Shown here one piece after another: positions 27,141-64,000 of a DNA stretch of 64,000 nt. The position numbers and the translations under genes were made by a program. Positions within the stretch are counted from its first letter, which is position 1. Each line of letters opens with the position of its first letter. Below the pieces are notes generated by a model. The model saw nothing but the letters and a program-made list of their open reading frames with translations. It was not told the origin of the DNA and did no database searches. The stretch comes from Paragordius varius (taxonomy: Eukaryota; Animalia; Nematomorpha), in contig OZ176050.1 in NCBI GenBank assembly GCA_964247055.1, forward strand, positions 9,176,001 through 9,240,000. The letters are read 5' to 3'.

Positions 27141-28546
27141 GGGTCAAATCTTTTTAACCATTATATACCGCACAAAAAATTAATTAAATTGTTAAAATTT
27201 AATATTTATTTAGATTGTGCCAAAAATGATTCTTTTCATATAATAAGAGTTATAAAAATAGATGTTAAAAATAGTAAAAACTAATAAGAGAAATATTGTA
27301 CATACCATTACAAAAGAAAGTGAGAGTAGCATCGTGATAATCAAAGAAATTTGCGAGTGTTCCTTCCATTAAAGCTTTATGCGCATATTCTTTGTTACGA
27401 CAAACCCGAACAAAATTTATTAATACTGAAAGCATTAGTTCAGGAGGATAATAACTATAATCTTTGGTTGATAAATTATCACAAAGGAAGGTTATCAAAT
27501 TTGGTATGATTTTAGGATCCAAAAATGTAGAGCATAAACTATTTGAATATAATGATAAAACATTTATTTTAGTTCATTAAATAAAATTTTGTTTATAAAA
27601 CAAACAATAATTATAATAAAATATTTTTTATATTATTGGGTTAAGACACCCTTATTCAATTGTTATTACACATAAACTTGGTGTATGTTAGCATATATTA
27701 AAATTTCCCTATTATCGTTTGAAATTAAACATTAAAAAACTTAAGGAAAATATATTACTTGTATAGCATTTGTATGAATTCTTCCGGCTCTCCATTATGA
27801 TCTGTGAGATAAAATAAAAAAATTTCATAATAAAACACCATTAATATTAAATGTGTAACAAATCTAATATCTTAAATTAGACCCATTGCATTAAAATTTT
27901 GCATATTTGCTAAAAAAGACAACAACAAGCATACCGTGTTCATGTTATCTGAATACGATCATTAATAAAATAACAACAATTATATTTGTACAATAAATTT
28001 AATCTTAAGTACATGGATTGGATTTTTACAAAATGTATATAATCTGCAAGAAAACATAATTTTTATACCGTCTTCATGTCCAAACCATATGGGATCATTG
28101 AAATCATTAAATCCATCTGCCAGATCAAGGCATATTTGCTTAAATTTTCGATTATCCTCAGTAGTGTCATTGTCTGTGTTGTTGAAAGAAACATGTTTAT
28201 GAATATTTCCATTATTACCCAATAAATTAATATTTTTATTGATGTTGAAATTAGCAGGGAGATTTGATTGTAAAAAGTTCCAAATATCTACGCAAGAATT
28301 ATTTCGTTGAGTAACTCCAAGCGTTGTAGAGTTTCGATTGTTTGACGATGTTCTTGAAGATACGGTGTTAACCGTATAAGTGACTGAATCATAAATAATT
28401 TTTGTTTCGTCACAATTTCCAAGTCCATGAACGAAAAAATGGGTGGTTAGATAACTAACAATAAATGTATAAAAATCATAACATTGTATAACAGAGGAAG
28501 AAAATTTCCGCACATTAATGGTAATAAATAAATCGACAACGTTTAA

Positions 28547-43500: not shown

Positions 43501-46500
43501 TACAAACTTCTATTTCTTTCTAAATTAAACGCAGGGGTGTAAATTTAATTTAGACTTTTAATTTCATATTTATTTATTTTTTTATTTATGTATGTATTTA
43601 TTTGTGCTAGAATTAGATGTGAAAATTTCCAAAATTATAATTGTTATTAAAATACTGTAAGAGTCACTTCCATCAAATTATGGAAATTTTAACAAGATAT
43701 AATTAAAAGCATTAACTATTTTATGAAATAAAACAGATAAGAAAGTAAAAATTAACTATGGAAAAAAATAATATATCTAATTGTTGTAAATTTTGAGATA
43801 AAATTAATTTTATTAGAACCATTCAAAAGTTCAGTTATATAATGGATAAATAAAAACCTGAAATCTTTGCAATAAAATATGTGGACCACCTTGATTAATG
43901 AACATTTGCAAATCGGCGACCGCTACATTATCCAATATTCGAACACAGCGTGTTTCATACTTTGTTTAAAAAATATTGGAATTATTTATCATTTTTTTTA
44001 AATTTAAATATATATATTATTATAATACCAAAATGAGATGAGGGTCAGATTTATATTTTGAGGCGCAAGCCAATAAATCCTTAATCATTCCATTGTTGCG
44101 AAACATTTCATCATCTATAATTCATTATAAAAAATAATTAAGCGTATATAGCTTCCAATATTCATGTATTATGAGAGCAATTAAAAAATTATCACATAAA
44201 GTACCATATCACAATGCTAAACTTTAAAACTTTTAAAATATTATATGAATTATATTAAAAACACCAAAAATAAAAGCATCATACCTTCGCCCAACTCGGT
44301 TAAATGAAAAACAAACGACAACAAACTCAATCCATAATTCTTGATTGCTATAGCTAACATCGTTTCATCAGAATTTACGGTGTTATTAATTTCGGGATTG
44401 TTAAATAAGTTCTTTAAGTCGGCATCTACGAAAACATAATTTATTTGTATAAATCTATATAAAAGTGTATAAAAATTATTATAAAATATAGTTAATTTTC
44501 TACTGTTTTGAGATGATGTAGAAAGGTATGAATTCACGCTATTCATATATGCGGAATTGTTAAGGAAATCTCGAATAGCTTTTGGTATTATGCCTGTATA
44601 AGATGCAATTTGAGTTGCTTCGACAATAAAACTCATGGGGATTTTACTGTAGTAAAATAAATGGTATTTTTGAAACATGGTACAATTGTTAAAAAAGGTT
44701 ATAATATAACTCCATTCACATTAAAATGCTATATAATACTAAAGAGCTCATATGCACTTTTTTCCGACTTCTAAATAAGCTCTGAGTTTTAAGGTGCTTT
44801 AACCACCAAAATATAAAAATAGATTGATATCTTCAAAATATAATTTTTATGAATTTTCATATGCCAATTAGTATTATACCTTTGAAAAGGTTGATGATTT
44901 GACAAAAACATCGTTAGGAACTGTAAAGCAGAGGTTTTGACCCGCTAAAAATGGAAATATATTCATTGCAACAATTAGAAAATATTAGGTTATGCATCAA
45001 AAAATATAAAAAGTAAGTATATACCAAATATATATTTTCGTTTGGAAGATTCAAGAGGTTACAAACATCAAAGATCAAATCTTTCGTTATGATTGAATGC
45101 AATTGATTTGTGTATTTTTTGCATTTCACTATAACAGATAAATATAATTGGGTAATATATAAATCAAATTAAATAAACCATGATAACGGTTTTAAATCTT
45201 TAAAAACAAATATTTTAAGAAGAAATGAATACATAATAATGCCAATGCTTTTAGACGAACAGATACAGCACATATTCGATTTTTTAGATTGGGAAACACG
45301 TAAGCCATTCTAACTTGACAAAATAATTCCATCTATTATATAATAAGAAAGGGTAAAAAAATTAAATTTATCATGAATAAAAATAATATAGCAAGGTTGA
45401 TTAAAAAACGGACGATGAAACAAACGATAGTTGCAAATTAATCATTACATCAGCACCGAGCACAGATGAATTAGTAATAAAATTTGTAAATTAGGAGTCT
45501 ATATTATGGTTATGTTACCAAATCTGACAAATTTTAAAACTAAGACTCATATTAGTGTAATTTATGTGAAAATTACGTACAATCATATGTTAAAATTCAC
45601 CACCATTAATAATAAAGCACCGTTTTATAATTTTTTTGTTAATTTCATCACATGTCTTCAAGATCAAAATGTAAATAATTACACAAAAAAAGAATTAAAT
45701 AAAGGAAACTATTTTGTCATACATACCTTCCTATCATCCGGAATGGTAAATCGTTTAAAAAAATCATGCATCACATAAGAGGGTATTGGATCCTTGCCCA
45801 CTAACTTTATATTAAATCACAAAAATAAATTGATAAAATAATTATTATATTGATGTGATAAAATCTGTTAAAAAATAAATGAATTTCTATTTTAAAGTTG
45901 GTTTTTAACTGATATCAAAATATAAATTTTTTTCGATACAAAAGTTTATTACTTTGTTAACATTATCTACGTGAATGGTAATATTGGAATCACGCAAGGT
46001 TGAATGCTGAGTAGTAGTTTCTTTGATATCCTATTTATTGATTTATATAATTATCATTGTATTAATAGAAAAATAAATTTGTTTGATTGATTATCCTCTC
46101 CGAACGAGTTATGTTTTAATGCACATTTCGATTTCATATTTTTTATAATGGTTTTTAAAAAAATAATTCATAATAAATCCAAAACAATACCCTAAACCAA
46201 TATCAGTTAAAACTAATCATGAATAAATAATTTAAATTATAATATCCTATTAAAATTTACACTATATAGAAATGAACCTTCCTAATATAAAAAATAACTT
46301 ATGTAATCGTAATTTTTAATTATTTTATAAAGTTAAGCACGTGTATCTTGCAAAATAATTTAGTTTAAAAAAATTATAAACAGATAATTGATATCAATAT
46401 CATTAAAAAATAATAAAATATAAATAAATTTTAATAATAAATATGCGTATATTGATTCAATCATAATCATACAATTAAACATTATTGGTAATTAATATTA

Positions 46501-47317
46501 TAATTTTACGTAATTAAAAAAATAAGACTTGACAATACAAAAGGCAAAATTATTATTGGTTCATTGGGTCTTTTAGAATGTTAGTACGGAAAAAATGAAA
46601 AACATAATGACAGATTAAAATATTTTTAAAGAGGTTCCCATTGACCAATAATATGGCTTTTTACTGTATTTACTTAATTATAAAAATATATTACGGGAGT
46701 AGTTATTGCTGAAGATGGGGCAAACTCAAAGTGTAGCGAAGTGCATGAACTTGGATAATCCTTTAAAAGATTTTAATATATAATAATTCTTACGGATAAT
46801 GGTTGATCCAAACAACAATTGAATAATAAGACATCATACCAATTCTGTAAAAAAATAAAAAGCCAAGAATTTACCTGTGCTAAGTAAAGAAGAGTGCTGT
46901 ACAATTTATTTCGTATACTTCGAGGTAACTTTATTAGTATATTTGATTTTTTTAACATATGGACTAAAAAATCTAATATATATTCTACAAGTGCATAATC
47001 GCTAGATTCCAATAAATTTATTAAAGCCTAAAAAATTAAATTTATATGAACTTTAATTAATTTAAAATAATTTATTTTGTGCTTGAAATCTGAGTTGGAC
47101 AAATTTTCAATCGCGTTCATCAATATTATTTTATCCTTATCAATTACTTTATATATACCAGGGTGTTTTGGGTTAAATCACAATTTAATAACCATTGAGA
47201 ATTAGGAGCTTTTTGACTAGCATTTTGAAAAAATTTAATCATTTTGTTATAATTTTCGTCTATCGTTTGCTTTTCAGCTTTTTTAATAAGATTTGCAGAC
47301 TTATCAAAATTATCCAT
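1..47317 (-). CDS. HUWE1: HUWE1-like giant HECT E3 ubiquitin ligase, multi-exon, 3'-truncated by the window edge
   Basis: Spliced exons give HUWE1 landmarks in the expected order: N-terminal helical repeats ([60 protein letters not shown]), UBA, a WWE-like segment, an acidic tract, three UBM-like repeats, [12 protein letters not shown] and the HECT N-lobe. The probable start MDNFDKS at 47317 opens a 53-codon phase-0 exon; an extra upstream coding exon is not excluded. Not every internal exon was resolved. Confidence 0.95.
26..1935 (-). CDS. HUWE1: HUWE1 pre-HECT and HECT N-lobe exons (1587-1935, 1017-1063, 834-942, 593-754, 26-131)
   Basis: GT-AG joins keep frame and give [157 protein letters not shown], a typical HUWE1-type HECT. 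The catalytic Cys lies outside the window. Confidence 0.97.
8382..10033 (-). CDS. HUWE1: HUWE1 exons carrying three ubiquitin-binding (UBM-like) repeats
   Basis: Exons 9807-10033, 9102-9305 and 8382-8499 encode [34 protein letters not shown] and [38 protein letters not shown]. Confidence 0.9.
21020..21961 (-). CDS. HUWE1: HUWE1 Asp/Glu-rich disordered tract (two exons)
   Basis: [36 protein letters not shown] and [18 protein letters not shown] sit at the position of the acidic region of HUWE1. Confidence 0.85.
22050..22956. mobile_element. Probable non-autonomous TIR element (hAT-like ends) in a HUWE1 intron
   Basis: Left end tagggcttcgaacagg and right end ccagttcgaagccctg are inverted 13-16 bp matches; several subterminal ccggtt motifs; no ORF; no clear TSD. 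Confidence 0.55.
27106..27140. repeat. Compound (AC)n(TA)10 microsatellite in a HUWE1 intron
   Basis: Directly visible acacac... followed by tatata... Confidence 0.9.
28553..28579. repeat. (AT)n microsatellite in a HUWE1 intron
   Basis: About 13 AT units, directly visible. Confidence 0.9.
28700..28790 (-). CDS. HUWE1: HUWE1 WWE-like segment
   Basis: [19 protein letters not shown] resembles the W-x-W...DD...G-x-W start of the HUWE1 WWE domain and lies downstream of the UBA. Confidence 0.65.
29704..29979. mobile_element. Foldback-type MITE family A, copy 1 (HUWE1 intron)
   Basis: TA|CCATTTAC ... GTAAATGC|TA ends, arms built of ~21-bp AATTCAAATTCACCCTTGAAC units, and a core shared with the copies at 38285 and 50692. 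Confidence 0.85.
32765..32863 (-). CDS. HUWE1: HUWE1 UBA domain
   Basis: [33 protein letters not shown] carries the MGF and EYLL signatures of a UBA domain. Confidence 0.92.
38285..38604. mobile_element. Foldback-type MITE family A, copy 2 (inverted relative to copies 1 and 3; HUWE1 intron)
   Basis: TA|CCATTTAC ... GTAAATGG|TA. The core has tataggtaat and catcattaatat, the reverse complements of attacctata and atattaatgatg in the other copies. Confidence 0.88.
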
Positions 47318-47567
47318 ACTAACTATGAAAACTTAACAGATGCTGAACTAACTATTAGCAAAATTACCAAATGAATTTTGAAACACTAAATCAAAGCTCT
47401 TTATTGCGCATAAAATTTTCAATGTATATTTGGGTGTTGTTAGACTCCCATTATCATTTCGCCTAAAATAATATATGGCTATGTAATTAATTAACTTTAT
47501 AAAATTAGCCTATATTTTATCGGCAAAATCTTAATATATTTTTGTTATATCAGCTTGTTTTTAGATC

Positions 47568-47740
47568 GTTTTTTGGAGCTGTCCAAATTTTAGACTGTAG
47601 AAGTCACAAAACTATAAAAATATAAGCTTTTTTATCTATTACTGAGAACAATGTTTGATAGATTAAGTTTTAACTAAAAAAACTTTTAAATCTGTAATTT
47701 ATTTACAAACTTCTCTGGAATATAAATTTACCCCAATATG
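47568..47740. repeat. Diverged dispersed repeat, homologous to 56421-56560
   Basis: Collinear shared blocks ttttggagct, tagaagt..aaaact.taaaaatat and ctct..aatataaa..taccccaa; the last block also occurs near 48431. Confidence 0.6.
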
Positions 47741-49134
47741 TAAGCTGGGACAATAAGGTGAAAAGTATATAAGATAAATAATTTAAAAAAATGTTTTTGC
47801 ACTATATGCCTTAAAAGCTAAAGAGAGCCTATTTTAAAATTGGCCTAATGGTATAAAAAATTAAGTTGATAAAATATATATATTTTGATAGAAAAATGTA
47901 TTAGGAATATCATGCTTTTGCTTTTAGGGCTAACGAGAGATATAACACTTCATTACCTTTTTACTTTTTACCCTAGTTTACATTTTTGGCCATTTGATAA
48001 CCCAGAGCTCAGATTTGATAACCTACTGTTTTGAAAGATATTTTAGTTGAAATTTAATTATCAATTGTTCGTATGTGGTTGATAAAAAAGCTAATATTTT
48101 TAACAGTTTTGTGCAATCGGGACAGCTCCAAATTAATTGAAAAAACAGCTGCTATTAAAATTAAAATTTATTGTGTTTTGCTGGTAAATTATAGCCTCTT
48201 TTAGAAGTTAATTATTTACTTTTTTAACCATAATATACATTAATTTGCTTGTTGCATTAGCGATTTAAAAAATTATAGAAAAAACGGTGAAAAAATTAGA
48301 GATGAGGATATTTTACAATTTTACATTTTTTAAAAAAAATATGCATTATGGGCCTAAAAGACCAAGAGCATATTTTTAAAATCGGCAAAATATTTTAAAT
48401 ACTTTTAAGGATCTTCAAATTTTAAATCGCTCTGGAATATAAAACTACCCCAAAAGATCATGGATAGTTAAAATATATACTTACACAATTGTGGTAATGC
48501 TCTAATTTAGAGAATGGCCAAATTGGCGGATATTTTTTCCAAAATAATCTGAAATATATCATATACTAGAAAAAAATAAAACAAGTTTTTTTTTAGATGT
48601 GTGCTTCGAAAGTGTCAAATTTTAAACCCCCTAAAAATGGGTAGGTTTTCTTTAACTTAGAGCGAAGCTGAGATAAAACCTTAATTTACATATATATGCT
48701 TGATTTTTATATCAAAAAATATTTTAAAAATATATATTTTGATATTTTGGTGATGCGAGTTGAAAAGTCTATCGCTTTAGATTTCTTAGTAGTATATTTA
48801 TTTCAAATTTTTGCTGGATTTTCGTAACTCAATTTATATTTAACATGAATCTGAGGTCGAAAAATATTTTAATTAAAATTCTAACCTGATAGAAATTTCA
48901 GCATCATCATATATCGAAAAAAGGTTTTTATAATATTTTTTAAATCTTTACATTGTTTCCATAATGTGTAAGAAGTACCTTTCAATACAATTTTACTAAA
49001 AATTATATTTTTAACAAAAATATGCTTTTTCAAAATAAAATTTTTGTCACAATTTATATTTGATATTTTGATCGCGCAATCCCGGCGCTTTTGCGTTTAT
49101 TTTAACACTTGGATACAACACACTCATTTTAGTC

Positions 49135-49683
49135 CTTCGATTCAAATTGGGGTAGTTGGATACCCCAGGCCTGTTTAAAATCAAATAGTTTAAAAAGTAT
49201 GGAAGCAATCGAAACCATGGCAAAATTTTCCACTTATATAACATTAATAAACCGAAATATAATAAAAATATTATTTAAAAATACTTGATATTACTTATTA
49301 TGACCTAAAACTGAAAGGTAAAAATTTAGTCAACGTGACATGTGTCAAATTATAAAATTAAAAATAATACAAAATAAACCGCTTTTTTATTTCTATCAAT
49401 GTTAGATGTAATTTATATAAAAAATAAGCTCTAGTTTTACCCCTAAAATCAAATGAAGATGACATTTTGCTAAATTTTTGTAAAATAAAAATGGCGTCGA
49501 AGTAGTTTGAGGTGGAACTTTTTTTACAATACAAAATTTTATCAAGATATTTTGGCATATTTATATAATATTTATCAGGATAGAAGCATAAATTTAAATT
49601 GGGACCGTTTTCTTCAGTAGTTTTTTAAAAATTTTAATTTAAACTTAGTCTGGGGTATTTAGATACCCCAATTTGAATCGAAG
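49135..49683. mobile_element. Inverted-repeat-bounded element of about 550 bp
   Basis: cttcgattcaaattggggta...taccccag (49135-49168) and its reverse complement ctggggta...taccccaatttgaatcgaag (49650-49683). Each arm is itself a small tggggta/tacccca hairpin. No TSD seen. Confidence 0.65.
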
Positions 49684-49689
49684 TGTTCA

Positions 49690-50178
49690 GAGAACTAGCC
49701 CATTTTAGGAGCGCCGAAAAATTTAGGATTTTCGGAGCTTACATCAAAAAATTAAGAAATTTTAAAATTTTAGCCTTTATTTATTGTAAAGAATTTATTT
49801 TTCTCCAAATAATTTTTTTTTTAATGTGCACAAATGATACCATTTTTTGATATGCACTTATCACAAAAGTGTTAATAACTTTCTTATATCACTTGTAATG
49901 ACCAAAATCACCATAATAATTCTGATCTATTTTCCTATTAAAATATATATATTTCCATAGGTTATATTATATGGATATTGTAATATTGGAAAATGGCATA
50001 ATTTGATTCTATTTAAATAATTTTTTCAGTGAAGCTAAATACTTTTTCCCAATATATATCACTAAAATATATATTAAACTAACTATAAAACGCAAAATAA
50101 TATTTTAAAAAATTTATTTATAGATGCGGGTTCCGAAAATTTTAAATTTTCCCGCTCCTCTAAAACGGGCTAGTTCTC
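49690..50178. mobile_element. TIR element (MITE-like) of about 490 bp
   Basis: Imperfect ~55-bp TIRs beginning gagaactagccc (49690) and ending gggctagttctc (50178). A diverged copy of the left end and interior starts at 56089. Confidence 0.72.
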
Positions 50179-50691
50179 TTAAAAAATGCTTATGCCGAGA
50201 TTGCTTAATTTAAATACATGCTACATTTTGATATCAACTATACATATTTTTTTAAATATGTAATTTTTAACCAAATTTTGTTGCATATTAATACTGTTTT
50301 GAGGCATGCTGGAAAAGGTATGAAAACGGTATAAGATATTATAAAAACACTTTGGGTGGGGTGATAAAATTGTTTAATGATTTTCAAGTTTTTCAAGTGG
50401 CTAGCTTTCATGTAAAAAAATGGAGTTAAGTAAAGCAAGAAAAATTGAATCGGATGTGATAAAAAATCATAGATCAAATAAAACTTAAAGATTTTTCAAT
50501 GGTGCAGGGCACCGTTGACGGTAACAAAGATATGTGTAAAAAAATTTTGGCAGCTATATATGCATATAATTTAGGTTTTATATAATATCGAAACCTTTGT
50601 AAATGTTATAAACTGTTTGATATTTGGCTAATAAAATACTTAATCTATGTGGATACAAAAGAAGATGATGAGAATTTTTTTGCGTATTATA

Positions 50692-50994
50692 CCATTTAAA
50701 ATTCAAATTCACCCTTGAACAATTCAAATTCCCCCTTCACCATTCAAATTCACCCTTGAACAATTTAAATTCTCCCTAAAATAAATTAGGTTTTTTTAAG
50801 ATTAAAAATTACCTATATTTTATAATATTAAAATATAAAATTCTGTTCAAAAGTAATATAACGCTGAAAAAATAATAAACAATATCGTAAAAATATATTT
50901 CATATTAATGATGAGTTATATTATCCCGAAAACACAAAATTTATTTTTAGGATGAATTTGAATTGTTTAGGGGTGAATGTGAATTGGATATAGG
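50692..50994. mobile_element. Foldback-type MITE family A, copy 3 (intergenic)
   Basis: TA|CCATTTA left end, four ~21-bp subrepeats, the same core as copy 1, and a degenerate right arm ending ..tagg|TA. Confidence 0.82.
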
Positions 50995-51676
50995 TATTAA
51001 AAACAACAATGCATCTAAAAGTTTTATAAATTCATCAGTTCCGCGAACCCTAAAAAACATTTGCATAAATCAATAATATATTTTTTGAGCATTTTTGAAA
51101 ATTAATCCCACAAAGATTCAGTAATGGGATTCCTAACGTACTTTGTACATCAAAATATGAATAGGAAGAATTTTTTCATTTTAAAAGTTAATAGTTAATC
51201 AAAAGTCAATATGTTGATATGTTTTATAGACATCCGATTTTTATTTGCAGACCCATCAAAATTGGTAGCAAAACGTGAAACGGACACGGGGGAAGTTATT
51301 GATATTATCAATTGATAAAATGGTGCAAAATATCAATCGAAGCATTTCCGATGAAATGATTTATAAGTTAAAATTTATTCATTTTATATATAATAATTAT
51401 AACTATGATTTTTTATTTTTAACTGGATATTAAACATCAAAGCTGTAGAAGTAACAAAAATGTTTAATTGTTTAATTTTTTATATTATAGGTACATCAGG
51501 ACCTAAACTACTTGTGATAAATAAAGAAGTAACAAAATCATCCCAAGATAAGAGAACTAAAATGCATTTTGGAAAATAAAGTGTTACAGCTTCAAAAAGA
51601 AGTTTTAGTTCAAGAAAAACATTAAAATAAATATTTATAATAATTGATACTGCAATAATTTATTTATATTACATTA

Positions 51677-54600
51677 CTAGCGTGAATCTCGTGCTGCTAC
51701 GCAGCCCGAGGAAGTCCTTCGGACTTATGGAGGGGGGGTTCGAAGTTTGGATTTGAATGGGTCTACCGTTTTTCCTGTACAAGATCACAAAGCCAGCATT
51801 TTCCATTTTTATAAATATATAGATGAGGATAAATAATGTATTAATATCCATATATCTTTTAACATGCTATGCATATGATAGATACTCCTTACTCAGCATC
51901 TATCATCAAAGAAACGCTTGACTAAAATTTTTGCCTTTTAACAGGCAATACGAAAAATCTTTCTCGAATTTTTACAGTCTCATACCGTGGACAAAAAAAT
52001 ACAATCAAAAAAATATTTTTGTGGACTTTGTTTTTTTTGAAAAAAATGGCATTTTACGGGGGTAGCGGGTAAAAAGAGGGCCTAAATCAAAAAAGTGACT
52101 CGACTATGTTCAGCGCGATCAAAAATAAGTAAACAAAATTCATATTTGAAATTGAATGGTCCAACACGTTCTCCAAAAAATTGACTTAACCCATTTTTCA
52201 CACGGGGTGGGCCCGAACTGGGGACCTAATTCCAAAAAAGGGCGAAGCTATTGTCGGGGCATTCATTAATGATTATATTTTTTCGATATTTGGATTTGAT
52301 TGGGATCACCGGTTTTCCGGAAACAGTTCACAAAGTTATATGAAAAATCAGTTTTTAGCGGGTAGCTCCTTACCCAGCAGCTATCATCAAATAAACGGTG
52401 GACTAAAATTTTTGCCTTTTAACAGGGAATACATGGAATCTTTATTGAATTTTTACGGTCTCATACCTAGGGCGAAAAATCGATTTAGAAAATTATTTTT
52501 GTGGACTTTGTTTTTTGAAAAAAATGGCATTTTACGGGGGGAGCGGGTAAAAAGAGGGCCTAAATCAAAAAAGTGGCTCGACTATGTTCGGCGCAATCGA
52601 AAATAAGTAAACAAAAATTATATTTGAAATTGAATGGTCCAACACGTTCTCCGGAAAATTGTCTCAAAAACACGATTTTGTGGACTTCTGTTTTCAAAAA
52701 AACCCGTTTTTCATACGGGGTGGGCCCGAACTGGGGGCCTATTTCAAAAAAAGGGCGAAGCTATTGTCGGGACATTTATTAATGATTATATTTTTTCGAT
52801 ATTTCGATTTGATTGGGTCTACCGGTTTTCCTGTACCAGATCACAAAGCCAGCATTTTCCATTTTTATAAATATATAGACTAGCGTGAATCTCGTGCTGC
52901 TACGCAGCCCGAGGAAGTCCTTCGGACTTCTGGGGGGGGGGGGGGGAGTTCGAATGCTATACATATGATAGATACTCCTTACTCAGCATCTATCATCAAG
53001 GAAACGCTTGACTTAAATTTTTGCCTTTTAACAGGCAATACGAAAAATCTTTCTCGAATTTTTACAGTCTCATACCATGGGCAAAAAAATACAATCAAAA
53101 AATATTTTTGTGGACTTTGTTTTTTTTTGAAAAAAATGGCATTTTACGGGGGGAGCGGGTAAAAAGAGGGCCTAAATCAAAAAAGTGACTCGACTATGTT
53201 CGGCGCAATCGAAAATAAGTAAACAAAAATCATATTTGAAATTGAATGGTCCAACACGTTCTCCAAAAAATTGACTTAACCCATGTTTCACAGGGGGTGG
53301 GCCCAAACTGGGGACCTAATTCCAAAAAAAGGGCGAAGCTATTGTCGGGGCATTCATTAATGATTAAATTTTTTCGATGTTTGGATTTGATTGGGTTCAC
53401 AGGTTTTCCGGAAACAGATCACAAAGTTATATGAAAAATCAGTTTTTAGCGGGTAGCTCCTTACCCAGCAGCTATCATCAAATAAACGGTAGACTAAAAT
53501 TTTTGCCTTTTAACAGGGAATACGTAAAATCCATATAGAATTTTTACGGTCTCATACCTAGGGCGAAAAATCGATTTAAAAAATTATTTTTGTGGACTTT
53601 GCTTTTTGAAAAAAATGACATTTTACGGGGGGAGCGGGTAAAAAGAGGGCCTAAATCAAAAAAGTGGCTCGGCTATGTTCGGCGCAATCGAAAATAAGTA
53701 AACAATAATCATATTTGAAATTGAATGGTCCAACACGTTCTCCGGAAAATTGTCTCAAAAACACGATTTTGTGGACTTGTGTTTTTTAAAAAAACCCGTT
53801 TTTCATACGGGGTGGGCCCGAACTGGGGGCCTATTTCAAAAAAAGGGCGAAGCTATTGTCGGGACATTTATTAATGATTATATTTTTTCGATATTTGGAT
53901 TTGATTGGGTCTACCGGTTTTCCTGTACCAGATCACAAAGCCAGCATTTTCCATTTTTATAAATATATAGATGAGGATAAATAATGTATTAATATCCATA
54001 TATCTTTTAACATGCTATACATATGATAGATACTCCTTACTCAGCAGTTATCATCAAAGAAACGCTTGACTAAAATTTTTTTCTTTTAACAGGCAATACG
54101 AAAAAACCTTCTCGAATTTTTAGAGTCTCATACCGTGGACAAAAAAATACAATCAAAAAAATATTTTTGTGGACTTTGTTTTTTTTGAAAAAAATGGCAT
54201 TTTACGGGGGGAGCGGGTAAAAAGAGGGCCTAAATCAAAAAAGTGACTCGACTATGTTCGGCGCAATCGAAAATAAGTAAACAAAAATCATATTTGAAAT
54301 TGAATGGTCCAACACGTTCTCCAAAAAATTGACTTAACCCATGTTTCACAGGGGGTGGGCCCAAACTGGGGACCTAATTCCAAAAAAAGGGCGAAGCTAT
54401 TGTCGGGGCATTCATTAATGATTAAATTTTTTCGATGTTTGGATTTGATTGGGTTCACAGGTTTTCCGGAAACAGATCACAAAGTTATATGAAAAATCAG
54501 TTTTTAGCGGGTAGCTCCTTACCCAGCAGCTATCATCAAATAAACGGTAGACTAAAATTTTTGCCTTTTAACAGGGAATACGTAAAATCCATATAGAATT

Positions 54601-55029
54601 TTTACGGTCTCATACCTAGGGCGAAAAATCGATTTAAAAAATTATTTTTGTGGACTTTGCTTTTTGAAAAAAATGACATTTTACGGGGGGAGCGGGTAAA
54701 AAGAGGGCCTAAATCAAAAAAGTGGCTCGGCTATGTTCGGCGCAATCGAAAATAAGTAAACAATAATCATATTTGAAATTGAATGGTCCAACACGTTCTC
54801 CGGAAAATTGTCTCAAAGACACGATTTTTGTGGACTTCTGTTTTTTAAAAAAACCCGTTTTTCATACGGGGTGGGCCCGAACTGGGGGCCTATTTCAAAA
54901 AAAGGGCGAAGCTATTGTCGGGACATTTATTAATGATTATATTTTTTCGATATTTGGATTTGATTGGGTCTACCGGTTTTCCTGTACCAGATCACAAAGC
55001 CACATTTTCCATTTTTATAAATATATAGA
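51677..55029 (-). mobile_element. Composite non-autonomous Helitron-like element: two units joined head-to-tail (55029-52880 and 52879-51677)
   Basis: The minus strand begins A|TCTATATATTTATAAAAATGG at 55029 and ends CACGCTAG|T at 51677: an A-T insertion site with no TSD. A GC-rich hairpin lies 7-12 nt upstream of each CTAG. The internal junction reads CTAG|TC at 52880/52879. No Rep/helicase ORF. Confidence 0.82.
51865..55029. repeat. Dimeric tandem array, (A about 0.49 kb + B about 0.52 kb) x3, period about 1056-1092 bp
   Basis: A monomers start near 51865, 52955 and 54013; B monomers near 52358, 53449 and 54507. A and B are homologous (shared gtggactttg, gagggcctaaatc, gaatggtccaacacg and gggcgaagctattgtcggg blocks). 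Confidence 0.95.
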
Positions 55030-56088
55030 TTAACCATTTAAATGTAGCGTAGAATAGAAAATAATTTTAGCAATAATTGGAAATAATAAATCGCATGTTT
55101 TCCTCTATCTGCGATTCTTTTTTCTTTCAGATAACTATAATATCCACAATATCTTTTATTTTTAATACCTCTTCAAAACTGTCATCATTCTTTCAAAAAA
55201 TGTCCCATGTTTAACAAAACTGACAGATTCTAATAAAATTGATTAATGTATCTAGGAATTCTCATTTTATTATAATGGGAATCGGCGTTTTAGCTGACCT
55301 AAGATCACCTGATTTTGCCATGCATCAGTTAATAATAATCTTTAGCTATAAGTAAATATCGCCCTTAAAATATTTAAACACTTTTTAAGATACTGGAATA
55401 TCTTATAATAAATTTTTAGGAAATGCTGAACTCGTGGTAAAATAATAGGACAGTGATTTTAAGGGCAAATTATCTCAATAAGGTGACGGGTTAAATATTA
55501 AAAACTATCTATATTTTATAATTTTAACATATTTTCAATTGGTTAACTTGAGTAAGTGTGATTGTATTGAATGTTTATCTTTTAGGTGGCTTGTTTCATA
55601 AATTTTGAGTGTAAATGATGAAAATAAATTCCGTAAAATTTTAATTGTATGGCTAAAAATTGACTCGGTATTTTTATCACCTTCAAGTGTAAACTTGCTG
55701 GCTTAACTAAATCTGGGCGTATTTTACCCGACCTTTATCTATATAAATAATGCTGACCATTTCTATCACACAAAATTTGATTTAAATTTTCTTTCGTCTT
55801 CAAATTTATGTTAAATAAAAATGGTTTTTTTAAAATTCACCAAAATTTAAAATAAAAGATTCTTAAATCAAAATGAAGCGATAGCGTTCAGCATAATCGG
55901 TATAGAAAAAGTGTTTATGAATATATAAATCGTTGTTATACCGTTTCCATAATGCTTCCAATTGAAGTATGAACAAAATTTTGCTGAAATTAAATTATTG
56001 AAAAAGCGTAAAAAATAATTTTAGTTAGTAAATTTGACATTGTATTAAAAAGTTTTAGAAATCTTGGTTTTTGTGCGCTTATTTTAAT

Positions 56089-56560
56089 AGAACTAGCCCA
56101 TTTTATAAAAGCGAAATAATTTGGGGATATCGGAGTACACATCAAAAAATAAACTCTTATTAGAAATATTGTTTTTTTATAGGGAGTTATTGATAAATTT
56201 CATTGTAATCTTTAAAGTTTAGCTTTAATTAAAAAAATGTGTATTTGTCCAAATTTTTTCAATTTGATATGGAGAATACAAAAGTGTAGAATCCTCTCTT
56301 AAATCGCTTGTAAGGGATAAACACAAAAACACCACGACAATCCTGCATTTTCCTATAAGAATATATATAATTTCATCAGGTGTTTTTTGTATTCATATGT
56401 AATCACTTGTGTTCAAACGTGTTTTGGAGCTATCCTGTATTAGAAGTTAAAAAACTGTAAAAAATATGCTTTTTTTCATCAGAGTGGTTGAAATGAGTTT
56501 CAACCATATTCACAATTTATTTACAAGTTTGCTCTATAATATAAAACTACCCCAAAATGT
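56089..56560. mobile_element. Diverged partial copy of the 49690 TIR element plus the 47568-type repeat
   Basis: Starts agaactagcccatttta. The interior matches 49820-49960 (tttgatat..caaaagtgt..cttgtaa..cattttcctat); the distal part matches 47568-47740. Confidence 0.6.
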
Positions 56561-56774
56561 AATCATTTATAAAAAAATCAAATAATGATGTATTTAAATG
56601 AAAGACAAAACAAAAATTTTTATTAAATATATTATATATATATTTAATGAAGACAATATCCCCCCCAATTTTCGGCACTGTATATATTAGTGATACTCGA
56701 CCACCCCCAACGAGCTGCATGTAGCACTAAAAGTGCGTTTTTATGCCCTAAGTTATTGTTTTTTTGTTTTGAGT

Positions 56775-56889
56775 AAAATATCTGCAAATGTGTCAAACAG
56801 CTATAAAAAATTTCTCGGTATTATATGGTGCACTGCCCTTGAGACAAGATAAATATATTTTGCGCCCTTTTTAAATTTTTGGTTGCTAC
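56775..56889. repeat. Short dispersed repeat, with a second copy at 60233-60339 downstream of HSF exon 7
   Basis: Shared tgcaaat.t.tcaaacagctat.aaa, gtgcac.g.cctt.agacaagataaata and ttttgcg blocks; a partial match near 16010. Confidence 0.65.
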
Positions 56890-57064
56890 GACTAGTGTAT
56901 ATGATTCATATTAGTGTAAGAATATAAATAAAAATAATTGTTTCGAAATATAATTACATAATAAGTCCAAATTAAAAAATTTATTTGGATTTGCAGTGAG
57001 ACCGGACTATCGCTAAAATGTTCATTAACTCGCCCATTTTTTCGTTCGACCAAATAATATTCTG

Positions 57065-60000
57065 ATGACTGCGACTATACCAGCCTTTGTTGCTAAATTA
57101 TGGTCTTTGGTTGAAGATGCGAAAACAAATCAGTTTATTACATGGAGCGAGGTTTAATTTATATAATTTATTTTAGAACGGCAATAGTTTTATGGTTTAT
57201 AATTCCACCATATTCTCCAAACTTATTTTACCTAGATATTTTAAGCATAATAACATGACTAGCTTTATCAGACAACTCAATATGTGTAAGATAATTTTAT
57301 TTATATTATAAGATGGATTTCGAAAAATTGCAAATATCGATCAAGGAAGTCTGAATTCTGCCAATGAAGATTTGGAATTTTTTCATCCATATTTTGTGAA
57401 AGGACAGCCATCACTTCTTCTAAATATAAAACGGAAAGTATTTTTGTTTATAATTGTCTATTTAGACTTTGCCGGAAAATAATCGTAATACCTCCCTCAA
57501 TTTAATAAGCGACATCACAGAAGTCAAAGAAAAACAATATGAAATTGACAATAAAATAGATGATATAAAGCGTGAAAACACAGCTCTCTGGGATGAGGTT
57601 TTATACCTGCGACAAAAATACAATAAACAACAATTAGTCATTAAAAAGGTTAACATTAATATTTATTAAATATTAGTTAATCCAATTTCTTCTAGCCATG
57701 ATAACACCTTACGGTAACATAAAAGTCAAACCCAAAATGCCAATTTACATCAATAATTTATTTAACAATCCTCGTAATTTAAGAGCTGTGGAGAATGTAT
57801 CAAATAGCGAAACTGAATATCATAACAAACTCTGTGATGGAACAAAATCTATTTTATTAGGTATGTGTGCAGGTTAATCAATAATAGAACGTTTAATTTG
57901 TACAGCAAATATTGGTAAAAATCCAATATAATGTTACAAAAGTTTAATATTAAATAATTAATATAAAGTGTTTTAACACTTCCTTTATACCCTAGAGACA
58001 TTAATAAATTTAAATATCTTAAAATATTCATCCGATCAAATTTTAGAATAGGCTTTGTTTGACCTTTTAGGCGCATGACATTGTAATAACTTCATCTCAT
58101 TTTTCTCTGCTTTTCGCTAATACACAAGGCAAGTATAGGTTTATTATGTCTAAAATATAAAAATAAATAACTTAAAAAGCTTTTACAAGCTGTATTTTAC
58201 CGGAAAACTTTGGATATTTATTAAATTAAATACGACTTTGCTTCAATCGTGTTATAGAGCTACCCAAATTCGAGACTATAGAAGTTTAAAAATTTTAAGT
58301 TATTTTATCTGATTCATTGGAAGAGGGTTTGATAATTAAATTTTAATTACAACTTATAAATCAGTAGTTTGCTTCTTTGAGCGGGGTAAAAAACTACCTC
58401 AAAATCGCGTACAAAAAATGAAAATATAATGAATTGTTAGAATGTTGTAGTAACAAAGTTTTGATCAGCGCATAAAATTGTTTTTTTAATAATTCCTTGT
58501 TATTTTGATTTACCAAGAAAGTTATATCGCCTAAATAAAATTAACTCTTTTATATAACATTAAAAAATGGAAATTTTAGTCCTTTAATTTAGCTTTAGAA
58601 TGAAATAAGTGACTAAACTAGTTTAAATTACACTTTTGAATTCATTTTTTCAATTAATTTCTGATTATAAGTTTGCACTTCAAGAATAATATATTAATAA
58701 AAAAGTTAATTTGTTTTCATTGTGCAATAAACCTTTTATCCTTACAGTTTCATAAATATATAATTTTATATAACGTTAATTATGTAGAAGGACATCAAGA
58801 AAGCCATCCCAAAAAATTAAAGATCAATGTATCACAAGTTGATCAAAATGACACCATGCAGTTGTTGGAGCCTGCTCAACAATTATTGTTGGATCAAATT
58901 ATGAGTCAACAATCACCCTCAATGGAAATTGAAGTAAATACCGAACACGATGATAATGCTGACCAGCCTACGCAAAAGGAGGATTTATTAAATTTAATAA
59001 CCACAAATATTCTCCCTTCATTAAACAAATCTAATATGGATAACATGAATAATGCACCAATATCTAAAAAATATAAAAGAGTAAATGATTACAATAATGA
59101 ATCGGATCTTAATATGTTTGATGATTTTGATATCCCGGCCGCACTCAAGGATCATGTCACATTTTCGATTAACCCTAAAACGGAGCATTATAATGATAAA
59201 AATATGGAGGAAGAAAGTTGTTCACTTTACAATTGTCCAGATGGTATGTATAATATTTTTAATTTAAAAATTGGTTTCAACCACTATGGGTTTCATAAAA
59301 TTTTTATCTATAAATTTGTTGGAAATTTTATTGGGGATAAATGTAATTCGTACAAAAATTATGCAAAGAACTTATAGACTAAACTTTTTAGACATATTTG
59401 ATTATCTATTCTATGATAAAGCACTATGATGTTATTTGAAAAAAACTCAGACTAGCTTAATACGTTTTATACCATTTTTTATTTTTTTCGAAAAAAATAT
59501 AAAAATATAGGCCTTTACGATCAAATATTTCCTATTTTAATCGTTATTAGTTTCATTCCCTTTTTATCAGTTTATAAAATTTAATATGTAATACAGAAGC
59601 TAAGATTAGCAAATAGGTGGAAATAATTAACAATTTATATCGAAATTATCTCTAGTTTGGTACAAATAAAGTTTTATTCCTTTTTTATATTGTTTATCAA
59701 TAATTTAATATACAGAAGCCAACAGGTTTAACAAACAAGTGGATCCAACAGTTAACAACAATTATATAATGAATCCTTTGGCCCTTACCCCTTCTATGGT
59801 GGTGGAAGGAAGTGGTTTTGATTTCGATGACGTTTATGATCAAATTTATGATTGGCTCGATTTTGATCAACCTACCGCTATTAATAAAAACAACGGGAAT
59901 GCCATGATGAATAGTATTCAAACACCGAATACATACAATGATGAAAGATCGCTCATATCATCTAATAGCACTAATCTCAAAGATCTTGTGGGCAAGGGTG

Positions 60001-60674
60001 GGCTTTCATTAGATGCTAGTTTGCTAGTCGATTTGGTATGATAGATAATAACTATATTATATAAAATTAACTCATATCAGTCTGAGTGAGTTTAATTCAT
60101 ATAAAGACTGGGTATGAATGCCATCACGAACATGATTATCACCGTTTTCAAAAATGGTCGAAATCATGCCATACAAAATAAAAATAAGATTGGTTTATAT
60201 ACAACAAGGGCTCTAAATTTATTTTAAATAATTGCAAATTTATCAAACAGCTATGAAATTTTTATCGATTTTATATAGTGCACGGTCCTTTAGACAAGAT
60301 AAATAATTTTGCGACACTCTAAAATTTTTTGGTGAGTACCTATAACTTAAAATTAAGGTAAAAAATGTTTAAATTTAATATCCTTGATTATTATTACACT
60401 TAATTAATTGATCGATTATTTTTAATTTGTTGGATACATTTGTTTTTGGTTAAAAATGGCTAGACCGTGATTGACTGCTTTTAACCCTTAGTTAAATTAT
60501 TTTTGGCCTAATACCTATTATGTGTAAATAATATCCTATATCTGCCTTTAGATGCGAAATATTGAAAATAACGATTTGGATTACTCAAATTTAATGTCAT
60601 CCAAACTTGATGAAAACAGAGAAGAAAAAGCAACACAAATCGCAAAAGTCACACCTAAAAATATTAACTCTTAA
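57065..60674 (+). CDS. HSF: Heat shock transcription factor, about 528 aa if the last exon is used
   Basis: Exons 57065-57151, 57177-57285, 57313-57437, 57466-57648, 57677-57860, 58788-59243, 59716-60035 and 60552-60674 splice in frame. The DNA-binding domain reads [63 protein letters not shown], and HR-A/B reads [31 protein letters not shown]. The final exon is less certain (alternative stop at 60041). The paralogue cannot be assigned. Confidence 0.93.
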
Positions 60675-60771
60675 TTTCATCCCTACTAATCATATTACTA
60701 CATTCTGCAATATAAATTATAATAGTTTCTAGATTTAGTTGTGAAATAAATCTATAACATTTATTAATATA

Positions 60772-62547
60772 TTATGTTTCTCGTAAATGCGGGAATGTTG
60801 GCATAAATTCAGGTTTACACGGGTAAGGACTTTCACGAAAGTATGGGCTTTCTAAGGCACTTGCAGCAGTTATTCTATAAAGTGTAAAAAATATTAGCTT
60901 TAATCAAAAATGGTTTGTTTATTGATGAATGAATGATATTGTATACCGTTTTTTGGGATCATAAGCTAATAATGAAAAGAGAAGGTTGATGCCGTTATCG
61001 GATAACCATTGAAACGTATTTTTAATGCTATTGTATTTTTGCTGTTTTAGTTCAAATTTTTTGATCATGGGTAATGTGCTAAACCCTTCCCATATTTTTT
61101 CATTCGGTGTTCCCAGTAAATCAATAATCAAGCTAATTTGCTGTAATTCAGATTTTCCTGGCAGCAGTGGCTTATGTAATAACAATTCGCCCAAAATACA
61201 TCCAGCGGCCCTAAATAAAAACACATACATCAAATTAAAACGATTACTTCTTCGAAATAATATAAAAAATATGGTACACATATTTTGAACGTATCGTATT
61301 CTCGATTTATTAGACAAATTATTTTTTATGCACAATGTTATTATTATTTCTTAAAACCACTATGCATTCTGTTTTAATAACCAGTCAAAAATTTTACACA
61401 AGTTATATAATGTGGTATAAAACTTTATACAAATTTCAAAATGCGAGTTTTTAAGAATCTTCTTATTAATGATATTTTAAACCAATTGGATGGATTAATT
61501 TATTTGTTGTGTTTAATTATAATGTAAAATGACTGGGTATGACCGTGAATTTATAACGGTGAGCCGGCTGTTAAATTTGTATAGGCCAAAAAACCCCATC
61601 AAAAAAATATTGTGAACCTTAAACCGGTTTCAAAATAATATAAAAATAAATGGTTATATTTCCGATGTAGTATAGTGACATTCATAGTGGTTTAAAGCTA
61701 TCAATAACTAATCCAATTAATTGTTAAATAATTAGGCATAAAAAGAAAAAACCAAATGTCAATCGCCGTTGTTTGAGCCTTTGAGCCAAACAAAAGTTCT
61801 GGTGCTCTATACCACATAGTAACCACGTTCGGTGTTAACAATGATTCAGGAGGATTGCCAAACTTGCGAGCTAGACCAAAATCAGCTAAATATTATTCAC
61901 ATAAATTAACCAATTTTTACGGATCCAAAATCATTCATTAAAAGGTTTGAAACTTTTATATCACGGTGCAAAATATATTTAGAGTGCAAATATTTAAGGC
62001 CATTTAACACTTGAATCATAATACATTTGACCTGATATATTTGTATGAAGTTATACCTGTGCCTCTGTAAAGGGCTTTTGCATATAATCCAATAAGCTTG
62101 CCAAATCTTGTTCACAATATTCCATAACTAAATATATACTCTGTAAACTATAAATCAAAAGTTTAACTTATCATAATTTTTCCCAATCGCTATATCATAA
62201 ATTTTAATTATATTTGGATGAGGGTCATCATCCTTAAAATAAAGAATAAAAAACCATGGACAAATGCAGCAGTAAAGATATTTCTCGCAAAGAAGTAAGG
62301 GGAATTTCTTTATCCGACAAATTTTCACTATTTGTTCGAATTTTTTTAAGTGCGACGATTTTCTGACTTTCCTTATCAAGAGCCTTATATACAACTCCAT
62401 ACGTCCCTTCGCCAAGTCTTTTTAATTTTTTATATTTTTCAATCGATTTACAATTATTATGCTTGAACTATAATTAAAAAATGCGATTACTAAAAAATTC
62501 TTATCTAACAAATATAATTTATTTGAAGAATCCTCCATATCTAACAT
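60772..62547 (-). CDS. CDK10: Cyclin-dependent kinase 10, 348 aa, 8 exons
   Basis: Exons 62491-62547, 62255-62467, 62168-62232, 62057-62147, 61911-62031, 61753-61885, 60947-61210 and 60772-60874 total 1047 nt in frame. Motifs are [65 protein letters not shown] and C-terminal [12 protein letters not shown]; the set favours CDK10 over CDK11. Confidence 0.9.
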
Positions 62548-62733
62548 GTGTTCTTATTTATTTGCGCAAGCTCTATTTTTTTGCAAACCTAACCTGGTTC
62601 CGTTTACATTAACTTTGATTTGATACCATTTGCTGTTTATAATTTAATTCTTGGCTATTTCAATTATGGACAAGTAAATATAAATAAACTTAATATTTAG
62701 ATCTTTGTGTTTATTGTTTGTTGTCTATTTATT
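62548..62733. promoter_or_regulatory. Probable bidirectional promoter and 5' UTR region
   Basis: Only 186 nt separate the divergent ATGs of CDK10 (62547) and the right-hand ORF (62734). Inferred from gene arrangement, not from motifs. Confidence 0.6.
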
Positions 62734-64000
62734 ATGAGCGTATCTGACAAAAAACAACAGAAAAAACCTCATACTCCTTTTTCACTTAATCATTTTTCTA
62801 ACTATGGACAATTAAATGGCGAAATGATAGCGTTACAGGTCAATTCGCAGCAAAATAGCCATCCTAAGTCACATTCAAATAATACACATCGACCAAATCA
62901 ATATTATAAAACGATAGAATCAGATATGAATGTGATTCAATCCGCGAATCCTTCGTTGGGTATTGAAAAAAATAATTTTAAAACAAATGGATTACCCTTG
63001 AACAATATAATGGATTCTAACATGATGAATAATTTGAATTGCTTACACATTATACCAGTTAGTCAAACACCACTCTTTTACGTGCCAACTATGAATAATT
63101 TTAAGTTTTTACAATCACCAAATAATCAATATCCCCCACAATTCCCATATCCATTGAATGCGAATCCCAATTTATTATTTGGCAATGTACCTCAGCAACT
63201 TTTCCCAGTTAATCTTGTTGCAGTGTCATCACATACAACCATTCCGAATTCTACCTATTCTTATGGACAATCTATGGCTATAAATGGCAATGAATCAACG
63301 ATAATTGAGTCCTCGAATTCTGGTACCATTTCCTCCGTCGCTCAAGTGGTTGGAACCATGAGTTTACCCTTTAACAACGATAATAGTAAAAATGTTTCAT
63401 ACATACCAAATCATTTGCAACAATCGCAATCATATGCTGCACCAGCTTTTCCCACTCAAATTCCATTTCCCTTGGCATACCAAAATATACCGTCCCCACA
63501 CAACACAAATAATGCCCCATCATTGGGATATCCTAATGCTCCTTTCATAAATTTGTTGCCGGTTGGGAGCGTGAGTGGAGCGCCCGTGGCACCATTTATA
63601 CCCTCTGCATTTACTAATCATCCCCTTATACCTAATTTACAGAACCTTCAAACTTTACCGGTGATAGCTTCAGCTGGAGTTGGATCAACCTACAATGGTA
63701 GCGTTAATAATGGTATGGCTTTGGGTACAACAAGCCTAATATCGTCCTTGACTACAACTACGCATACGACAACGTTATCAGCTATGATGAATTCTAGCAA
63801 CATATCCTCTTCCATCATATCATCCCAGCATAATCACCATCAACAAGCGCCGCCCCCTTATGTTATAGCTTCTTTAGTTTCAACTCTGCCACAAAGCTCA
63901 ACAACTATGCTTATACACAACAATAATGCTAATATTGTTCGGAGCAAAGCAGTCAATGCATCATCGAGCGGCGAGGAAGGTGGTATACATGTTTTGCCTA
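62734..64000 (+). CDS. Unknown protein, N/S/P/Q/T-rich low-complexity N-terminal region of at least 422 aa, open to the window end
   Basis: Stop-free frame from MSVSDKKQQKKPHTPF to EEGGIHVLP, with higher GC than the flanks and PPPY at 63850-63861. It is absent from the ORF track, presumably because it has no stop in the window. No domain recognised. Confidence 0.85.
   Translation, partial: MSVSDKKQQKKPHTPFSLNHFSNYGQLNGEMIALQVNSQQNSHPKSHSNNTHRPNQYYKTIESDMNVIQSANPSLGIEKNNFKTNGLPLNNIMDSNMMNNLNCLHIIPVSQTPLFYVPTMNNFKFLQSPNNQYPPQFPYPLNANPNLLFGNVPQQLFPVNLVAVSSHTTIPNSTYSYGQSMAINGNESTIIESSNSGTISSVAQVVGTMSLPFNNDNSKNVSYIPNHLQQSQSYAAPAFPTQIPFPLAYQNIPSPHNTNNAPSLGYPNAPFINLLPVGSVSGAPVAPFIPSAFTNHPLIPNLQNLQTLPVIASAGVGSTYNGSVNNGMALGTTSLISSLTTTTHTTTLSAMMNSSNISSSIISSQHNHHQQAPPPYVIASLVSTLPQSSTTMLIHNNNANIVRSKAVNASSSGEEGGIHVLP

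Follow-up and report, generated by a model that had tools for sequence, protein, structure and literature searches.

Probable mini-introns of 20–33 nucleotides at the 5′ ends of three genes of the hairworm Paragordius varius

How short an intron can be is usually viewed as a fixed trait of the spliceosome of a species, and a 64-kilobase (kb) stretch of the Paragordius varius genome (contig OZ176050.1, positions 9,176,001 to 9,240,000) raises the question of whether this limit may depend on where in the transcript an intron lies. The whole of this stretch was analysed and is referred to here as the window. Three of its genes, encoding HSF, a CDK10-like kinase and HUWE1, contain several introns each, and in all three the coding frame close to the ATG is interrupted by segments of only 20–33 nucleotides (nt). 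Judged from the genomic sequence, these segments are very probably U2-type GT-AG spliceosomal introns that are found only in the first ~0.65 kb past the ATG of multi-intron genes, with later introns being conventional and having a minimum of about 65 nt. As far as the literature we found goes, this layout has been published only for blood flukes, and it is more extreme here. The three genes are located as follows:

47317 to beyond window position 1, minus strand: HUWE1, ATG at 47317, a very long gene with dozens of introns
57065–60041, plus strand: HSF, ATG at 57065 and stop at 60041
62538 to about 60772, minus strand: CDK10-like kinase, ATG at 62538 and stop near 60772

Mini-introns of HSF, CDK10 and HUWE1

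A total of 13 mini-introns were identified in the three multi-intron genes, with lengths, in order, of 25, 27, 28 and 28 nt in HSF, 23, 22, 20, 25 and 25 nt in CDK10, and 23, 24, 30 and 33 nt in HUWE1. Consistent with the initial annotation of this DNA, all 13 are bounded by GT and AG, and so are nine of nine hand-checked long introns (72–927 nt). The mini-introns have an A+T content of ~84%; the G+C content of the window is 24–37%, mostly 25–30%. Both classes carry a T-rich tract upstream of the 3′ AG, with T at 69–77% in mini-introns (positions -4 to -7) and at 54–69% in long introns (positions -5 to -7), which against an AT-rich background is a weak criterion.

Homology support for a junction was defined as contiguous Pfam profile positions over exons, or as an alignment gap together with an in-frame stop. 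Homology searches were run exon by exon, and exons were joined only locally, for frame checks, in which the joined frames proved free of stops, and for training of the codon table. According to the initial annotation, all mini-introns but the stop-free 30-nt one of HUWE1 must be removed to restore conserved frames. Homology bears this out for seven mini-introns, and for four more it follows from frame continuity or an absent start codon; the case for HUWE1 intron 1 is weak, and that for HUWE1 intron 3 (30 nt) is ambiguous. As far as the genomic sequence allows, support is thus strong for seven mini-introns, adequate for four, weak for one and optional for one. In DNA of this composition GT occurs roughly once per 20 positions, as does AG, and the chance of finding both at the sites required by homology is estimated to be <0.05 per junction (27% G+C DNA, slack allowed), or <1e-9 jointly for the seven homology-fixed junctions. 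Because the profiles are contiguous across HSF introns 1 and 2 and CDK10 introns 2–5, six junctions are fixed to within a few bases.

The introns of HSF are as follows:

57152–57176, plus strand: mini-intron 1, 25 nt, phase 0, GT-AG; HSF_DNA-bind profile positions 1–22 lie in exon 1 and 23–58 in exon 2
57286–57312, plus strand: mini-intron 2, 27 nt, phase 1, GT-AG; profile positions 23–58 precede it and 60–100 follow
57438–57465, plus strand: mini-intron 3, 28 nt, phase 0, GT-AG; exon 3 reaches profile position 100 of 100
57649–57676, plus strand: mini-intron 4, 28 nt, phase 0, GT-AG
57861–58787, plus strand: long intron 1, 927 nt, phase 1, GT-AG, from exon 5 to the 152-codon exon 6
59244–59715, plus strand: long intron 2, 472 nt, phase 1, GT-AG

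Mini-intron 2 splits the codon at profile position 59 and, when retained, gives an in-frame stop, and retention of mini-intron 3 shifts the frame, a stop following a few codons later. The 61 codons of exon 4 form an open frame that resembles a coiled coil. When mini-intron 4 is retained, a stop follows after 7 codons, and its removal opens 61 further codons; this junction may match the HSF oligomerisation helix. Searching HSF exons 4 and 5 against solved structures recovered no HSF chain and coiled-coil noise only. The long introns of 927 and 472 nt in the initial annotation were reproduced, the latter being found by our gene parse (see below) at all penalties tried. A third intron of 516 nt (60036–60551) is possible but not needed, since the frame ends at 60041, and it is the sole doubt among the earlier coordinates and lengths, all others of which were reproduced by direct reading of the sequence. 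If used, this intron may add a 40-codon last exon and an antisense overlap with the region past the CDK10 stop.

The CDK10-like gene contains five mini-introns and two longer ones:

62468–62490, minus strand: mini-intron 1, 23 nt, GT-AG
62233–62254, minus strand: mini-intron 2, 22 nt, GT-AG; Pkinase profile positions 1–56 lie in exon 2
62148–62167, minus strand: mini-intron 3, 20 nt, the shortest, GT-AG; exon 4 covers Pkinase 71–98
62032–62056, minus strand: mini-intron 4, 25 nt, GT-AG; Pkinase 71–98 precedes it and 101–139 follows
61886–61910, minus strand: mini-intron 5, 25 nt, GT-AG, the last mini-intron; Pkinase 101–139 precedes it and 141–180 follows
61211–61752, minus strand: long intron 1, 542 nt, GT-AG; the frame is continuous
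60875–60946, minus strand: conventional short intron, 72 nt, GT-AG

Exon 2 lacks an ATG ahead of the kinase glycine loop and is preceded by an in-frame TAG, so that an upstream exon with the ATG, and with it mini-intron 1, is required. Exon 3 (21 codons) has no Pfam match but fits the Pkinase gap at positions 57–70, and exon 4 resumes at position 71. The full CDK10 model, all five mini-introns included, was recovered exactly by the gene parse at every penalty. The spliced frames of both HSF and CDK10 are complete and free of internal stops (no TAA or TAG), as expected under the standard genetic code.

In HUWE1, four mini-introns precede the first long intron:

47136–47158, minus strand: mini-intron 1, 23 nt, GT-AG, joining open frames of 62 and 49 codons
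47028–47051, minus strand: mini-intron 2, 24 nt, GT-AG; its final three bases are an in-frame TAG
46845–46874, minus strand: candidate mini-intron 3, 30 nt, stop-free, with strong GT...T-run...CAG signals
46761–46793, minus strand: mini-intron 4, 33 nt, with an in-frame stop inside
46031–46694, minus strand: long intron 1, 664 nt, GT at 46694–46693 and AG at 46032–46031

A HUWE1 profile was built from 20 full-length relatives fetched via the HECT exon and was searched against all minus-strand open frames. The top-scoring named relatives are arthropod and Trichuris proteins, and none is from a flatworm. Pfam searches of ten HUWE1 5′ exons or open frames returned one sub-threshold DUF908 match only, and the N-terminus is divergent. 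Mini-intron 1 is weakly supported, as neither of its flanking exons (1 and 2) has a significant homology match. The acceptor of mini-intron 2 is fixed because exon 3 opens directly after it and matches HUWE1 profile positions 117–168 (independent E-value (iE) 1.7e-5); unlike this homology-fixed acceptor, its donor is the nearest solution. Candidate mini-intron 3 can be read through, and the alignment with homologues is about equal whether it is spliced or retained. Mini-intron 4 coincides with a 10-residue gap in the tblastn alignment to the protein P0038, and with it spliced out, HUWE1 and P0038 each have a CC-to-HFEF stretch of 21 residues. Five nt upstream of the HUWE1 ATG, a 45-nt GT..AG segment with good site scores (47323–47367, minus strand) may be a mini-intron of the 5′ untranslated region (UTR).

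Other kinds of interruption were considered for these segments. With a donor [AG]TATCCTT and a branch-site motif TCCTTAAC as criteria for U12-type introns, the donors of the 13 mini-introns were examined, and none of them begins with GTATCC or ATATCC, positions +3 to +6 being merely A or T. Segments excised at the DNA level, as in ciliates, are opposed by the GT-AG ends and the standard code; programmed frameshifts or assembly errors are opposed by GT-AG ends at the required places in 13 of 13 cases.

Intron length and distance from the start codon

The confinement of mini-introns to the 5′ end, as claimed in the initial annotation, holds for three of three multi-intron genes, in which introns 1–4 or 1–5 are 20–33 nt and all later ones are at least 65 nt in length. 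Donors of mini-introns are located between +48 and +628 nt from the ATG, and all mini-introns lie before about +650. The last mini-intron donor is at +584 in HSF, +628 in CDK10 and +524 in HUWE1, and the first long-intron donor is at +796, +786 and about +623, respectively, which places the switch from short to long introns at 0.52–0.80 kb past the ATG. Among 74 introns in the window, 13 are 20–33 nt, none is 34–64 nt, 16 are 65–104 nt and 45 are longer. The downstream class comprises 61 introns of 65–927 nt, all past about +620 nt from the ATG. There are thus two peaks of minimal introns, at ~25 nt and at ~65–90 nt, which are segregated by position. An order with all short introns before all long ones would arise by chance with a probability of 1/15 in HSF, 1/21 in CDK10 and 1/210 in HUWE1 when only the six homology-anchored long introns of the latter are counted; the joint probability is ~1.5e-5 on this conservative basis and ~6e-9 with the 57 modelled HUWE1 introns.

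Most of the downstream class comes from HUWE1, in which the following features were recognised:

1–46030, minus strand: rest of HUWE1, ~57 modelled introns of 65–746 nt, none shorter
41395–41682, minus strand: downstream intron, 288 nt; flanking exons at HUWE1 profile positions 541–581 and 581–655
943–1016, minus strand: HECT-region intron, 74 nt, hand-read GT-AG; profile positions 3444–3461 and 3456–3497
755–833, minus strand: HECT-region intron, 79 nt, hand-read GT-AG; profile positions 3456–3497, then 3497–3551

The six homology-anchored long introns of HUWE1 are 664, 288, 450, 74, 79 and 461 nt in length. Downstream of exon 6 the HUWE1 model is approximate and unsuitable as an annotation, and the lack of mini-introns there is judged from a crude home-made parse plus profile anchors. 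The parse permits introns from 18 nt upwards at an equal cost for all lengths. One version, which chains exons according to codon usage learned from the window itself, yielded 56 HUWE1 exons and no intron <70 nt. Another version, to which splice-site matrices were added, yielded 57 HUWE1 introns of 65–746 nt with flanking exons of at least 80 nt; parsing with splice-site scores creates spurious micro-exons, and hence only introns between exons of this size were used.

A strict-score scan for mini-introns in downstream HUWE1 gave 22 candidates in sense orientation and 13 among antisense controls. Each of the 22 in sense orientation is located within a modelled long intron or at its edge, and many reuse its donor or acceptor. 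De novo scans for GT..AG segments that join open frames discriminate poorly in AT-rich DNA, antisense scores being nearly equal. The top-scoring candidate of another scan falls within a conserved protein motif and is clearly false. An ascertainment bias from the placement of conserved domains was also considered and rejected: the kinase domain spans the whole of CDK10, yet introns 6 and 7 are 542 and 72 nt, and conserved parts of HUWE1 (HECT, DUF913) lie tens of kb downstream, with introns of 74, 79, 288, 450 and 461 nt.

Two further observations concern HUWE1. Its 159-nt intron at 27910–28068 (minus strand) contains a 25-nt unit resembling a mini-intron at its start (28068–28044) and another at its end (~27934–27910). 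The ~109 nt between them contain stops in all frames ahead of the second donor and could represent an exon that has decayed or one that acts as a poison cassette. Two large exons at 20900–22000 (minus strand) are made up nearly throughout of D, E and N runs, and they yield many overlapping low-complexity matches to the acidic region in other HUWE1 proteins.

One neighbouring gene also bears on the position of the CDK10 transcription start:

62735–64000, plus strand: gene 4, one uninterrupted open frame, 420 codons or more in length, that continues to the window end

Gene 4 is rich in N, S, P and T residues and is intronless over its first 1.27 kb. Its ATG and that of CDK10 are on opposite strands and 196 nt apart, which suggests a shared bidirectional promoter. 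Given this distance between the divergent ATGs, the transcription start of CDK10 should be no more than ~0.2 kb further upstream of its ATG. A 27-nt GT..AG segment with good site scores (62674–62700, plus strand), 34 nt upstream of the gene 4 ATG, may be a 5′ UTR mini-intron. Elsewhere in the window, a tandem repeat at about 51900–55100 has a unit of ~1058 bp with 37% G+C and identical open reading frames at 53246 and 54304. An Rfam search of the whole window gave no match, so that this ~1-kb repeat is not a 5S or spliced-leader array, and no small nuclear RNA was detected.

Possible position-dependent splicing and its rivals

The best explanation as a whole, mechanism included, is in our view that splicing depends on position, and we give it a probability of roughly 0.45. 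The mechanistic part considered on its own is slightly more tentative. From the genomic sequence we infer excision of the mini-introns from RNA, as well as any role of the cap, the promoter or the state of the polymerase. The splicing machinery would accept introns shorter than ~35 nt only as long as the transcript has not grown far from its 5′ end, so that early in elongation, near the promoter, very short introns could be spliced by intron definition. Beyond this zone, the usual pairing of splice sites would need ~65 nt or more. Selection together with deletion would then push 5′ introns to the lower limit, and 3′ introns would stay at or above the higher one. More doubtful again is a distance-gated second splicing mode in the strict sense, with 20–33 nt accepted within ~0.6–0.8 kb of transcript and at least 65 nt required beyond.

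The idea of two splicing regimes in one transcript had been put forward in the initial annotation, and it fares well in one respect: there are two length classes separated by position, each with its own floor, and the interval of 34–64 nt is empty. Two floors with an empty interval between them lend some support to two regimes, as simple random lengthening would not yield them. The cause proposed there, assistance by the cap or the promoter, is hypothetical, and a comparison of motifs in both classes gives no sign of distinct machinery. A precedent for position dependence is found in the cap-binding complex, which reportedly stimulates splicing of the cap-proximal intron (work attributed to Izaurralde et al. 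1994 and Lewis et al. 1996). The effect resembles the pattern described here in being position-dependent and linked to the start of the transcript; we know of no link between it and minimal intron length.

Several points weigh against position-dependent splicing or against the intron set on which it is based. The sample consists of only three multi-intron genes in the window, and HUWE1 introns 1 and 3 are weakly supported. The gene parse misses small exons: the 5′ mini-introns of HUWE1 and some of HSF went unrecognised, and where exons are short it is estimated to detect perhaps 50–60% of the mini-introns between them. No difference was detected between mini and long introns in the core donor and acceptor motifs (n = 13 and 61): G at +5 is present in 15% of mini-introns and 36% of long ones, and T at -3 in 54% and 74%, in a comparison for which the long-intron set was partly selected with the same splice-site matrices. 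A protein word search with CDK10 exon 2 gave a best identity of 66% and no product of this or a close species. In addition, the known cap effect concerns the first 5′ splice site only and not four to five introns over 650 nt.

The similarity of splice-site motifs in both classes is what a single machinery would give, and it fits a different account, in which the spliceosome removes introns of 20–30 nt anywhere in a transcript and the distal introns have all been lengthened by insertions or duplications. The 5′ introns would have been spared because insertions within ~0.6 kb of the transcript start are purged, the promoter otherwise being silenced or disturbed, or because of a local deletion bias. 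The many long introns found in this genome beside tiny ones also agree with such position-dependent intron evolution. Random lengthening, however, predicts a continuum of lengths and some leftover downstream mini-introns; 0 of 61 downstream introns are <65 nt, and 16 fall within 65–104 nt. Traces of insertion are also scarce: shared-word and self-BLAST tests revealed no common inserted sequence among the short downstream introns, a tandem-repeat scan of 40–64 kb revealed no tandem arrays in the introns there, and the long HUWE1 introns were found to be nearly free of repeats within the window. We regard this account as the main rival and give it a probability of about three in ten.

An improbable alternative attributes the pattern to intron-mediated enhancement, in which start-proximal introns are kept for a boost in transcription or export and are trimmed to the shortest spliceable size, while the lengths of downstream introns drift. 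Such enhancement depends on proximity to the transcript start, and the mini-introns are dense (four to five per 0.65 kb) and strictly start-proximal. The absence of downstream introns <65 nt is left unexplained by it, and gene 4 does without any intron in the region concerned. Even less probable is an artefact, either because the segments are not removed at all (pseudogenes, assembly errors or frameshifting) or because downstream mini-introns have been overlooked. The imperfect downstream HUWE1 model and the lack of detectable homology in HUWE1 exons 1 and 2 speak for it; against it, GT and AG lie exactly where required at all seven homology-fixed junctions, with the joint chance of <1e-9 given above, and the spliced HSF and CDK10 frames are complete and stop-free. 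Overlooked mini-introns are also hard to reconcile with CDK10 and the HECT region of HUWE1, which are conserved throughout and whose downstream introns are all at least 72 nt.

Comparison with other short introns and implications

Small 5′ introns in genes of the blood fluke Schistosoma mansoni were reportedly first described by Berriman et al. in 2009, and the minimum intron of this species is ~26 nt. The flatworm parallel drawn in the initial annotation is correct, the 5′ small introns of S. mansoni being documented by Protasio et al. (2012, PMC3254664). They were missed by RNA-seq assemblers, and dropping the first four exons restored the agreement between models (Protasio et al., 2012, PMC3254664). 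S. mansoni and P. varius share small introns in the first few positions, large introns downstream and a repeat-rich parasite genome. Different from S. mansoni, P. varius belongs to an unrelated phylum, its small introns are smaller (20–33 nt) and the switch is sharp, with 34–64 nt empty in the window. P. varius thus shows the arrangement of blood flukes in a more pronounced form, in which introns shrink to as little as 20 nt and the boundary is sharper. In the literature searched, we found no published mechanism for the blood fluke case and no hairworm report of a 5′ polarity of mini-introns; the word 'intron' is absent from the preprint on the genome of the hairworm Gordionus montsenyensis.

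Introns of comparable size are known from other lineages. Those of the ciliate Paramecium are ~25 nt in length, and introns of the dicyemid Dicyema japonicum are uniformly short, with a mean of 38 bp (PMC6736024). Like those of P. varius, they are GT-AG spliceosomal introns a few tens of bases long, and they show that a spliceosome can work at such a size. Short introns are essentially the only kind in dicyemids and ciliates, whose genomes or genes are compact, whereas 61 of 74 introns in the P. varius window are 65–927 nt, so that it does not belong with these uniformly tiny sets; here the tiny introns share transcripts with long ones. In the usual animal pattern the first introns are the longest. 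Length thus depends on ordinal position both there and in P. varius, but the direction is reversed.

Standard gene finders and RNA-seq aligners disregard introns under ~30–50 nt. As these tools ignore tiny introns, most gene models in such genomes are likely to be broken at their 5′ ends. It may be speculated that broken 5′ models add to low completeness, such as the 71.6% BUSCO score of the hairworm assembly with the same G+C content, the reported value for G. montsenyensis being 26.93% and thus at the level of the window.

If a distance-gated mode of splicing were true, minimal intron length would be set by the position of the polymerase or the transcript and not by the geometry of the spliceosome alone, and the introns of 20–33 nt would be among the shortest in any animal. 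Two minima sorted by position would make it directly testable whether minimum intron length is a fixed trait of the spliceosome, and blood flukes, which have the same polarity independently, provide a comparison that bears on this question.

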